From assembly GCA_965655095.1 (NCBI GenBank), contig OZ296648.1, forward strand, positions 157,480,001 through 157,544,000: a stretch of DNA of 64,000 nucleotides, written 5' to 3'. Source of the DNA: Haplodiscus bocki. Lineage: Eukaryota. Positions 6,901 through 10,379 of the stretch are shown here, one piece after another; the first letter of the stretch is position 1, and each line of letters starts with the position of its first letter. Under the pieces are notes generated by a model. The model was not told where the DNA came from and ran no database searches. It saw nothing but the letters and a program-made list of their open reading frames with translations. The position numbers and the translations under genes were made by a program.

Positions 6901-7673
6901 GTGTTTCAGTCTATGCATAAAACCAACAACAATGTGAACGGTTAAAACTTCTCCTTTTAGAAACAGGGAAACTAAAAGTTTCTGTAGAAAGTATGGCAAT
7001 AAAAAACTGGTCATTTACTTACTGTATAACCACTACATCCGGTTTTCTCGAAAGATCAATACGAAGCTAAAAGTTTTGCTAATGGCCACAATGCAAAACT
7101 GTTTATGTTTAATGGGAAGCGTAACCATGCGTTGTGGGTAATGGGACTTACTGCTCACCGGAGGAGGATGCTAACACCTTTTGAAGAGCTTTAAGGGAGA
7201 AAGCCGTCAAGAACAACCAATATTTTTCAACCCAAACTAACAAAACTTTCTTACTCGGATAAAGTTAGTGTTACCAAGAATCTGCAAAATTTCTAGTGTA
7301 CATCATGGACAACGGAAAACGAAAATTGAAACACTTCGCAAGAAGCTCACTGGAACGTTTACTCATGACAAAACCGTCAGATTCTGACTGCTCCACTCGT
7401 TTTTTGTGATCAAGTATTGAAACTGTCTGATACCACCAGCATTTTTTCCGCCCTCCAAATTTTTGAAATGCCTTTCCCAAAAAAGAAAGCGCTTTTTCTG
7501 GAAAGTACTGTTTGTCTTCATGTAAATATCGATTTTTCCAGATTAAAAATTTTTCTGATTTTTCACCAAAATATATTAATAAAAATGGCACTCGGAGAGC
7601 GCAGATCCCGCGAAAGCCCTTGATCTTTCCCTCGCCAAACAAACAAACAAACAGACGAACAAACAAAAAATTT

Positions 7674-7747
7674 TGTCCACACAGAGGTTCCAACTCTCGA
7701 CCCTCGCGTTTTTTGCACAATGCTCTTACCGACTGAGCTATAGGGCC
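7674..7747 (-). pseudogene. tRNA-like unit 1 (Ile(AAT)-type body; U33 lost; B-box damaged)
   Basis: Minus strand GGCCCTATAGCTCAGTCGGTAAGAGCATTGTGCAAAAAACGCGAGGGTCGAGAGTTGGAACCTCTGTGTGGACA; the T-loop has TTG instead of TTC. Confidence 0.75.
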
Positions 7748-7815
7748 GTACTCATCTGATTACTATTATGAGATTACTATTATCAGATTACTATTATCAG
7801 ATTAACAAAAAATTT

Positions 7816-7889
7816 TGTCCACACAGAGGTTCCAACTCTCGACCCTCGCGTTTTTTGCACAATGCTCTTACCGACTGAGCTATAGGGCC
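7816..7889 (-). pseudogene. tRNA-like unit 2 (identical to unit 1)
   Basis: Same sequence as 7674-7747, including loop CAAAAAA and the GTTGGAAC B-box lesion. Confidence 0.75.
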
Positions 7890-7957
7890 GTACTCATCTG
7901 ATTACTATTATGAGATTACTATTATCAGATTACTATTATCAGATTAACAAAAAATTT

Positions 7958-8031
7958 TGTCCACACAGAGGTTCGAACTCTGGACCCTCGCGTTTTTAGC
8001 ACGATGCTCTTACCGACTGAGCTATAGGGCC
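7958..8031 (-). tRNA. tRNA-like unit 3, Ile(AAT)-type body with anticodon AAA
   Basis: GGCCCTA-TA-GCTC-AGTCGGTAA-GAGC-A-TCGTG-CTAAAAA-CGCGA-GGGTC-CAGAG-TTCGAAC-CTCTG-TGTGGAC-A. D, anticodon and T stems pair; two acceptor-stem mismatches; A and B boxes intact; T6 downstream. Confidence 0.55.
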
Positions 8032-8236
8032 GTAATTATCTGATTACTCTTATCAGATTACTATTATCAGATGACTATTATTCTGGATCTGATTGAAATC
8101 TTGATCCAATCAGTATCTCCAGATAACTGTTATCAGGATCCAACAGGATATCCTGGATCGTAAACCAGTCGTTGATATACATTACCTCCTATTTTGAGAA
8201 ATCTTGCTAACAAACAAACAGACAAACAAAAAATTT

Positions 8237-8310
8237 TGCCCACACAGAGGTTCGAACTCTCGACCCTCGCGCTTTTAGCACAATGCTCTTACCGACTGAG
8301 CTATAGGGCC
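8237..8310 (-). tRNA. tRNA-like unit 4, anticodon AAA (loop CTAAAAG)
   Basis: A box TAGCTCAGTCGG and B box GTTCGAACC intact. One G-G mismatch in the T stem and two acceptor-stem mismatches. Confidence 0.4.
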
Positions 8311-8378
8311 GTACTCATCTGATTACTATTATGAGATTACTATTATCAGATTACTATTATCAGATTAACAAAAAATTT

Positions 8379-8452
8379 TGGCCACACAGAGGTTCGAACT
8401 CTGGACCCTCGCGTTTTTAGCACAATGCTCTTACCGACTGAGCTATAGGGCC
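8379..8452 (-). tRNA. tRNA-like unit 5, best-folding copy, anticodon AAA
   Basis: GGCCCTATAGCTCAGTCGGTAAGAGCATTGTGCTAAAAACGCGAGGGTCCAGAGTTCGAACCTCTGTGTGGCCA. Single C-T acceptor mismatch, perfect D and T stems, anticodon stem with two G-U pairs, discriminator A, then AAATTTTTT. Confidence 0.6.
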
Positions 8453-8520
8453 GTAATTATCTGATTACTATTATGAGATTACTATTATCAGATTACTATT
8501 ATCAGATTAACAAAAAATTT

Positions 8521-8594
8521 TGGCCACACAGAGGTTCGAACTCTGGACCCTCGCGTTTTTTGCACAATGCTCTTACCGACTGAGCTATAGGGCC
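8521..8594 (-). pseudogene. tRNA-like unit 6 (as unit 5 but U33 lost, loop CAAAAAA)
   Basis: A/B boxes and T stem intact; the anticodon loop lacks the invariant U33. Confidence 0.7.
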
Positions 8595-8799
8595 GTAATT
8601 ATCTGATTACTCTTATCAGATTACTATTATCAGATTACTATTATCCTGGATCTGATTGAAATCTTGATCCAATCAGTATCTCCAGATAACTGTTATCAGG
8701 ATCCAACAGGATATCCTGGATCGTAAACCAGTCGTTGATATACATTACCTCCTATTTTGAGAAATCTTGCTAACAAACAAACAGACAAACAAAAAATTT

Positions 8800-8873
8800 T
8801 GTCCACACAGAGGTTCGAACTCTCGACCCTCGCGTTTTTAGCACAATGCTCTTACCGACTGAGCTATAGGGCC
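8800..8873 (-). tRNA. tRNA-like unit 7, anticodon AAA
   Basis: A/B boxes intact and loop CTAAAAA. One T-stem mismatch and two acceptor-stem mismatches. Confidence 0.4.
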
Positions 8874-8940
8874 GTACTTATCTGATTACTATTATCAGAT
8901 TACTATTATCAGATTACTATTATCAGATTAACAAAATTTT

Positions 8941-9014
8941 TGGCCACACAGAGGTGCGAACACTCGACCCTCGCATTTTCAGCACATTGCTCTTGCCGAC
9001 TGAGCTATAGGGCC
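8941..9014 (-). pseudogene. tRNA-like unit 8, most diverged, anticodon GAA
   Basis: GGCCCTATAGCTCAGTCGGCAAGAGCAATGTGCTGAAAATGCGAGGGTCGAGTGTTCGCACCTCTGTGTGGCCA. T arm and B box damaged (TTCGCAC); downstream T-tract only T4. Confidence 0.7.
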
Positions 9015-9251
9015 GTACTCATCTGATAACTCTTATCAGATTACTATTATCAGATTATTATTATCCTGGATCTGATTGAAATCCTGTTCCAAAATCCGAC
9101 CAGTAGTTCATGAGAAACAGTTATCCGGATCTCAGATCCGGATTTCAATCCGGATCACGCCCAACTTTGAACTCGGTCTTCCTATGATCATTACCTCCCT
9201 ACTCACCAAATTTCATCAAAATCCGACCAGTCGTTTTTGAGAAATCCTGCT

Positions 9252-9286
9252 AACAAACAAACAAACAAACAGACAAACAGACACAC
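9252..9286. repeat. (CAAA/CAGA)n microsatellite of the HINE-like element; related tracts at 7636-7667, ~8209-8230 and ~8772-8793
   Basis: aacaaacaaacaaacaaacagacaaacagacacac read directly; GTTT/GTCT on the minus strand. Confidence 0.9.
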
Positions 9287-10379
9287 GAAGGTGATTGCAA
9301 TATCCCGCTTTTCGCGGGATAATAAAAGTGGAAAAGGCACTTAGAAGAATTCATATCGGTTGATGGCGTTTGTATGGTAAATTTGCCACTTTCTGGCGAT
9401 TAAAATTTTTCAAATTCAAAACCGGACGCGTGCAGCAAGTCTGACGTTGTCAATTAGCAAACACGTTAAGAAACGTTCGGTTTCAGTGTTTTGATTGAAG
9501 GATTTTGTTTCCATAATAAAAATGTGGGCTGATAATAGTAGTTTTTTGTTTATTTTGTACAGATATCAGCTACAGAAAAACTGGAAAGGAAAATACGAGG
9601 TTGATCGGATCAAAATTGTAGTAGCAAGATTTACAATAGGCTTTTTATGAGATTTTTGTTGTGCAGCAACCCTTCGAGCAACTCACAAAGGATTAAAGAT
9701 GAAAACCTTCATATTTTGGCAGGATTCCATATTCATTTGAACTTTTGAGTAATTAATTTATAGAATTTGTCTGTGCTGTAGAAAGTGAACTGTTTTGATC
9801 TAAAGATCAAATTATATTCTTCATCAGGTAACGTTTTTAAATTGATGGAGCGAAAAAATGCCACAAAATTAACGGCAGATTTGGTGGGGCAAAATAACAG
9901 TGATAAAACTAACCTTGGTAAATCATGGTGTCAAAACAACCAATGATTCACTCAAAGAAGAGGGGCAAAAAATTTCAGTCAGCGAACTAGCAACTATATT
10001 TGACATATCTGAGGTTCAGCATGCCAACTTTACTATTACATTTGTAAAAGCTTTTGTTTCCTTGTGAATTTTTTTCTCCGAAAAACTGAACAGTGTATGT
10101 TTTGAGGTTTCGTGCGGCGCGGGAATTCTATTGTCTTTTATTACTAGCGTTTTCTTTTTTCGAAGGACTTCTATTGAATTGAGAATGCTTTTATGTCGAC
10201 GTGTTGTTTTTGAGGCGTCGACTGAAACGAGAAAGCCCTTATGTCGATGTATGTTTTTCTGCTTTCTTTTGCTTTTTTGTTCTCACTTCATTCTTTTTTG
10301 CGCAAAGTTGGCGAGATCTACTACAAAAAACTTTCGGAAAACGCTCGAATCTCAGCGTAGATAACATATAGTGGGATGA

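Follow-up and report, generated by a model that had tools for sequence, protein, structure and literature searches.

We analyzed a 64,000-nucleotide stretch of the Haplodiscus bocki genome (C1:157480001-157544000 of a 1.5 Gb assembly; hereafter, the window), in which positions 7582-9322 are very probably a HINE, a DINE-1-like element of a young family of about a thousand copies that carries a tRNA-derived repeat and is moved in trans by a coding Helentron. The features by which HINEs are recognized are present: subterminal inverted repeats (subTIRs), the position of the 5′ subTIR and its accompanying inverted repeat (IR), microsatellite and tandem repeats, T-rich targets, and a coding partner with shared ends. 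A first-pass annotation, made from the letters of the window alone, had proposed a Helentron/DINE-1-type element here; the proposal is borne out when the minus strand is taken as the reading direction, and it fits the descriptions in PMC4067079 and PMC7492417.

The conventional 5′-to-3′ direction of the element is the minus strand of the window. After a T-rich flank come TT, the 5′ subTIR ATCCCGCGAAA, an A, the IR GCGGGAT, and a (GTCT/GTTT)n microsatellite. A left flank (LF) of ~185 nt then leads into the tandem repeats, whose units are all in sense orientation, and a second microsatellite. The element closes with the 3′ subTIR TTTCGCGGGAT, the palindrome GCGCTC-TCC-GAGTGC, and CATTTTCTAGTT before another T-rich flank. 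Its parts, in this order, are listed here in window coordinates.

9301-9322, minus strand: 5′ terminus, TT plus the 5′ subTIR ATCCCGCGAAA (9310-9320) plus the complementary IR, together an 8-bp hairpin (inverted-repeat search, folding)
9252-9283, minus strand: left-flank microsatellite (GTCT/GTTT)n, period 4, 8 copies (tandem-repeat search)
9066-9251, minus strand: LF, ~98-99% identical to a short HINE subfamily and to the coding Helentron
7662-9065, minus strand: central tandem repeat with eight units, 142-bp basic period, 10 copies
7674-7747, 7816-7889, 7958-8031, 8237-8310, 8379-8452, 8521-8594, 8800-8873, and 8941-9014, minus strand: the eight 74-nt units
8645-8799, minus strand: second internal LF-like piece with microsatellite (sequence comparison)
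8082-8236, minus strand: internal LF-like piece with microsatellite, separating unit blocks as part of a higher-order repeat; the array of the coding element has this piece 12 times
7636-7667, minus strand: microsatellite that separates the last unit from the right flank (tandem-repeat search)
7605-7615, minus strand: 3′ subTIR TTTCGCGGGAT, perfect inverted pair with 9310-9320
7588-7602, minus strand: 3′ palindrome GCGCTC-TCC-GAGTGC, conserved in sequence, weak in fold (copy comparison, folding)
7582-7587, minus strand: 3′ terminus CATTTT, without the final CTAGTT of the family (comparison of copies)

The subTIRs ATCCCGCGAAA and TTTCGCGGGAT form the perfect 11-bp pair that the first-pass annotation had described, and they are conserved in 45 complete copies of the family. 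The GTTT/GTCT microsatellite it had noted is present twice, on either side of the array. Its hairpin overlapping one subTIR is real: folded as single-stranded DNA, 9301-9322 forms an 8-bp stem of -8.7 kcal/mol (z = -3.8; 0 of 200 shuffles as good). This hairpin, however, belongs to the 5′ subTIR and its IR and is not a 3′ hairpin. The GC stem-loop at 7588-7602, also named in that annotation, exists as a weak stem and would be the true 3′ palindrome, with 6 bp including one non-standard pair, 12 nt from the consensus end. The family consensus extends 5-6 nt beyond the window copy at its low-coordinate end, where the terminal CTAGTT is missing.

Copies of the element were counted among 70 loci, taken as best matches, and exact patterns were counted genome-wide with reversed patterns as controls. 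The loci hold 45 distinct complete copies of 446-1739 bp with 0-8 units; the window copy is the longest, and its eight units tie with those of one other copy (L010) for the top count. The same termini are paired in the 44 further complete copies, and the genome contains 1008 exact matches to the 25-nt 5′ terminus, 870 to the 25-nt 3′ subTIR plus palindrome, 455 to the 40-nt 3′ end, and 702 to the 40-nt unit core (control counts, 0 for each). With the exact core present in a quarter of sampled units, the 702 cores suggest, by rough extrapolation, ~2800 units genome-wide. Searches with the unit, with the left end, and with the right end all gave many matches on all large contigs, and at ten loci retrieved by the unit alone, every unit was enclosed by the same two ends. 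At the loci examined, the unit always sits in elements or arrays, with no tail or target duplication of its own; it is not a free SINE (short interspersed nuclear element). Over the 5′ 235 nt of 64 copies, a sample biased to close copies, the median divergence from the consensus is 2.5%, which agrees with the recent insertion or amplification proposed in the first-pass annotation.

Ends and target sites were compared among the 45 complete copies. TT precedes the subTIR in 44 of them, and the start reads TT followed by ATCCCGCGAAAA, that is, TT, ATCCCGCGAAA, A, and GCGGGAT. The 3′ ends read CATTTTC.. in 39 of 45, mostly continuing to CTAGTT, and the other six, including the window copy, stop within the T-run. 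Flanks are T-rich, and no flanking sequence beyond TT is repeated on both sides. In L052, a copy inserted within a (GTTT)n tract, exactly two extra T are left; therefore, one TT is either part of the element or a 2-bp duplication, an ambiguity that the literature shares. Several loci (L013, L014, L016, L023, L024, and L026) contain successive 5′ ends without intervening 3′ ends, and another (L044) contains a head-to-tail pair in which the inner copy is cut in the T-run. Tandem copies with 3′ truncation are known in the Helentron superfamily (PMC7492417).

A search of the genome with the Pfam model Helitron_like_N gave 147 matches, with one near-identical group that has long open frames. The coding Helentron with the same subTIRs, which the first-pass annotation had suggested looking for, was found at C1:147361954-147374416. 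It spans ~12.46 kb and consists of the 5′ end, LF, 23 units, LF again, the gene, and the 3′ end. Locus L071 (C1:147362000-147371999) covers its first 10 kb less 46 nt, and ~7.5 kb of the 12.5 kb were examined as sequence. L071 begins in the left-flank microsatellite and LF and continues, on the gene strand, with 12 LF-like pieces in addition to 23 tRNA-like units. After the array, the microsatellite and LF recur up to the equivalent of window position 9090, where the sequences diverge, and the open frame follows 199 nt on and extends past the end of L071. The LF block common to the window copy, the short HINE subfamily, and the coding Helentron likewise stops near 9090, and short-read contigs branch at this position. 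The complete 5′ terminus TTATCCCGCGAAAAGCGGGATATTG occupies C1:147361954-147361978; it is on the gene strand and precedes the start of L071 by 22 nt. The 3′ subTIR and palindrome lie at C1:147374377-147374401, again on that strand and ~290 nt past the end of the frame. No further exact 25-nt 5′ or 3′ end occurs between C1:147361954 and C1:147374401.

The open frame of the coding partner has 2203 codons and no stop. Its examined part contains DUF6570, an OTU protease, and Helitron_like_N (115.5 bits). The closest relatives of the frame, at 54-66% identity, are proteins of 1.9-2.2 thousand residues from amphioxus and metagenomes that contain Rep, PIF1, and Exo_endo_phos (PF03372). Residues 1350-2218 of an amphioxus protein (P0003; PF05970 and PF03372) align with C1:147371536-147374082 at 60% identity over residues 1-867. 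The predicted product is a single protein with Rep, PIF1, and a C-terminal apurinic/apyrimidinic (AP) endonuclease, the latter two domains being assigned from the 60%-identity alignment. The coding copy is apparently intact.

Other copies of the gene, among them copies on C8 (about 4.7-19.7 kb) and C2074, were located as well. The LF-to-gene junction is conserved at 12 or more loci, and LF repeats precede the gene in at least two further copies. At two more loci, C1:16.55 Mb and C1:139.84 Mb, the endonuclease end is followed ~295 nt on by the exact 40-nt 3′ end. By its coordinates, C1:16548680-16551052 comprises the 5′ terminus, one unit, a partial PIF1/endonuclease region with stops, and the exact 3′ end, and it is an apparent 2.4-kb deletion intermediate. 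The closest foreign Helentron (L074), whose protein is 60% identical, has a GACG-type microsatellite upstream of its gene and zero tRNA-like units; because of this, the tRNA-like array is not general in this Helentron clade. In JGI metagenome contigs, neither the 5′ end nor the unit core was matched exactly.

All eight 74-nt cloverleaf-like units reported in the first-pass annotation were located. The Rfam tRNA model places six of the eight above its gathering score (30.9-56.3 bits), and ARAGORN calls five, all with the anticodon AAA. The two leftmost units have no call from either program, and their anticodon loop and B-box are altered. Each 142-bp period consists of ~3.5 copies of a 14-bp minisatellite, then the 74-nt unit, then a T-run on the strand of the unit. 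Periods of 279 and 563 reflect a higher-order repeat in which two LF-like pieces split the array. We derived a consensus from 286 distinct units. It has a good A-box TAGCTCAGTCGG, a B-box matching at 10 of 11 positions (AGTTCGAACCT), and a terminator, but its cloverleaf is mismatched at C5-U69 and G50-G66, in the acceptor and T stems. Over all stems of the 286 units, compensatory change amounts to 2 cells in total, and pair-breaking changes are far commoner than pair-keeping ones. The units vary no less than the adjacent 14-bp spacers. Positions of the A-box are less variable than the remaining unit (0.029 versus 0.061). The anticodon loop is mostly CTAAAAA, with CTGAAAA in some units and U33 lost in some. 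A frequent B-box variant, GTTGGAA, which is found in the two leftmost window units, changes a normally invariant C.

A compensated cloverleaf and a standard anticodon set, as expected of functional tRNA genes, are thus lacking despite the six Rfam passes. We read the units as decayed, tRNA-derived pseudo-tRNAs that would be drifting within a repeat; some may still be possible templates for RNA polymerase III (Pol III). The "tRNA cassette" of the first-pass annotation is better called a decayed tRNA-derived unit. With this refinement, its reading of a rolling-circle DNA vector for tRNA-like units, and not a retroposed SINE, is supported.

In the superfamily, Rep nicks the ends, a PIF1-type helicase displaces a single strand, and insertion takes place at a T-rich site. 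For the present family, we observed directly the architecture, copy numbers, shared ends, T-rich targets, the varying number of units, the partner's open frame, and the lack of retroposition marks; rolling-circle transposition itself we infer. The following course of events would account for these observations. A tRNA gene, with the T-run that serves as its Pol III terminator and a spacer made of a 14-bp minisatellite, would have been captured by the coding element first. The array may then have grown and shrunk within the coding Helentron by unequal exchange or slippage. Internal deletions of this parent would have produced short derivatives, now far outnumbering it, and the Rep/PIF1-helicase/AP-endonuclease protein of the coding Helentron would mobilize the short element in trans. 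The units would meanwhile drift as pseudo-tRNAs, possibly keeping their Pol III promoter boxes, with no presumed role in translation. Composite arrays and unit-rich stretches of tens of kilobases (C1:36.15-36.20 Mb and others) may have arisen through failed termination or through nested insertion of the element into its own T-rich microsatellites.

Could the units instead be working Pol III genes that the Helentron keeps for its own benefit, either as TFIIIC insulators that shield or open the chromatin of the transposase gene or as sources of small RNAs? In favor, 23 units are still in place immediately upstream of the gene in the apparently intact coding element, and the LF repeats upstream of other gene copies point the same way, as do the good A-box, the 10/11 B-box, the T-run after every unit, and the lower variation of the A-box. 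If this were true, it would explain why 23 units are kept upstream of the gene in the coding copy, and the family would be a DNA-level vehicle spreading Pol III sites by the thousand through the genome of an animal. However, the units are conserved no better than their 14-bp spacers, the stem changes are uncompensated, the common GTTGGAA variants alter the B-box at a normally invariant position, and copies with zero units, like the subfamily with another core, have spread as well. We therefore consider a working function of the units unlikely.

Dispersal as a tRNA-derived SINE, or a SINE cluster spread by retroposition with incidental inverted repeats, would fit a tRNA-like unit with internal promoter boxes in thousands of copies. 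It is extremely improbable here: there is no A-rich or LINE (long interspersed nuclear element)-derived tail and no target duplication per unit, the T-run being followed by the next spacer instead; the units are always head-to-tail between fixed ends common to 45 copies; and the same ends enclose a Rep/helicase gene. It is very improbable, too, that the array is a host tRNA gene cluster, a plain satellite, or an assembly artifact. Tandem tRNA clusters occur in other eukaryotes (PMC10701932), this genome has unit-rich stretches of tens of kilobases, and short contigs cannot verify the internal array. Yet hundreds of copies, identical at their ends but not in their flanks, are dispersed over all large contigs; the units have the anticodon AAA, and the consensus acceptor and T stems are mismatched. 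As to an artifact, independent short-read contigs (four runs of two samples in one study) span both flank junctions of the window copy, on the left to 7607/7608 and on the right from 9301; summed word depth in these contigs is several thousand-fold higher inside the window copy. Two further classes were considered and rejected. A canonical Helitron has 5′ TC, 3′ CTRR, a 3′ hairpin, and A/T insertion; CTAG is found near the 3′ end here, but the element begins with TTATCC, has subTIRs, and is flanked by T on both sides. Assignment to the miniature inverted-repeat transposable elements with terminal inverted repeats was rejected on membership tests.

Against the reading of 7582-9322 as a HINE mobilized by the coding Helentron, a number of observations have to be counted. 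The 49-nt stretch around the 3′ palindrome has a fold no stronger than that of its shuffles (z = -0.12). The youth and uniformity of the family are overestimated by the choice of loci as best matches. No empty site was recovered, which makes the stated ends, and the assignment of the TT next to them, provisional. The length of the eight-unit array is that of the assembly, with short contigs covering the flank junctions. Finally, the last 2.4 kb of the coding copy, including PIF1, the endonuclease, and the last 40 nt, are known from search matches and coordinates only, the 3′ end being seen up to C1:147374401, 15 nt short of the stated terminus.

The layout of the element is close to that of Cg_HINE from the Pacific oyster (PMC7492417). 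Both have a 5′ subTIR with IR, a 4-nt microsatellite of the GTCY type, a variable spacer, and central tandem repeats in one orientation, followed by a 3′ subTIR and then a palindrome, which folds weakly here. Both insert at T-rich/TT targets without target duplication, combine related flanks with unrelated cores, and have arrays that also occur as longer satellite-like stretches. The Cg_HINE monomer, in contrast, is an anonymous sequence of 160-170 bp, whereas here it is a tRNA-derived Pol III unit with terminator that reaches 56 bits in Rfam. The likeness to Cg_HINE is one of layout; in the present family, a coding partner could be placed as well, with ends and array in common with the short element. 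DINE-1/INE-1 of Drosophila and HINE-Mo of the mite Metaseiulus, which are mobilized by Helentrons with common termini (PMC4067079), share subTIRs of 11-15 bp (on the 5′ side, 2-4 nt in from the terminus), a palindrome that lies 8-35 nt before the 3′ terminus, a microsatellite, central repeats, and variable T at the ends. The H. bocki element differs from them in having no DINE-1 core block, a 3′ subTIR nearer the terminus (~29-39 nt), a weak palindrome, and tRNA-derived cargo. With tRNA-derived SINEs, it has in common a tRNA-like head, A and B boxes, and a high copy number; unlike in SINEs, the units are in tandem within Helentron termini and lack a tail and target duplications.

A tRNA-Cys cluster on Arabidopsis chromosome 5 overlaps annotated Helitrons, and capture of tRNA by a rolling-circle element has been proposed for it (PMC10701932). 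By the account of that paper, a capture of this kind would give the Helitron-family transposons their first cargo of non-coding RNA, although prediction tools did not confirm the element there (PMC10701932). The two cases are alike in that tRNA genes occur in short tandem units linked to Helitron-superfamily sequence. The Arabidopsis case, however, is a single locus for which mobile copies are undemonstrated (PMC10701932), whereas here there are hundreds of bounded, dispersed copies and a coding Helentron.

The survey also brought up variants and relatives of these elements. A second complete copy, with six units, lies at about C1:157478049-157479361 (within L027, C1:157476545-157479711), just outside the left edge of the window, 8.2 kb from the window copy and in the opposite orientation. 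A subfamily of short HINEs, 446 or 663 bp long (L012:990-1672, L017:1496-1962, L022, L031, L036, L039, and L040), has its first ~240 nt and last 41 nt in common with the tRNA-array element and a different core. This core contains a B-box-like piece, GGTTCGATCCCC, in both orientations and receives no tRNA call from Rfam, and it has no match in the part of the coding element covered by L071. Satellite-like expansions of the unit core, 12-44 kb long, occur at C1:36152353-36196134, 116715782-116728311, and 133400004-133433255. At C1:14078193-14099173, three exact 3′ ends lie 10,470 bp apart on one strand with no Rep match, probably a tandem segmental duplication containing one element. Other sequencing runs that share words with the window stretch were coral and reef metagenomes only, with 5-9% of sampled words.

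In the coding Helentron, the interval between LF and the start of the frame (L071:5283-5480) holds approximately three tandem copies of a 68-nt repeat, the number of which seemingly varies among copies. Two further Helitron-like genes were seen elsewhere. On the minus strand of L073:4990-9963 (C3:133952989-133957962), an open frame with 1658 residues in the examined part contains Helitron_like_N, PIF1, and a C-terminal GIY-YIG nuclease in place of the AP endonuclease; matches of this type recur at ~15-kb spacing in clusters on C3, C9, C1, C4, and C23. On the plus strand of L072:4098-9998 (C6:63144097-63149997), a frame of 2225 codons contains an N-terminal UCH ubiquitin hydrolase, DUF6570, Rep, and PIF1, and no sequence of the tRNA-array element lies near this gene within the 10-kb locus.

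Members of the Helitron superfamily capture fragments of protein-coding genes, and HINEs carry anonymous satellite-like repeats. Full-text searches of the literature turned up no Helentron or HINE described as carrying a tRNA-derived repeat. The new findings are the coding partner, which shares the ends and array of the short copies, and the deletion intermediate. The case is clear-cut in that bounded dispersed copies, intermediates, and a coding parent with the same array occur side by side, and it shows a DNA-based route, unlike SINE retroposition, by which tRNA-like Pol III units are multiplied to thousands. Families of this kind inflate tRNA gene counts in annotations and may scatter TFIIIC/insulator sites, and their arrays can seed satellites. 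With a parent, a deletion intermediate, and short derivatives in one genome, the family is a good system for studying the origins of HINEs.

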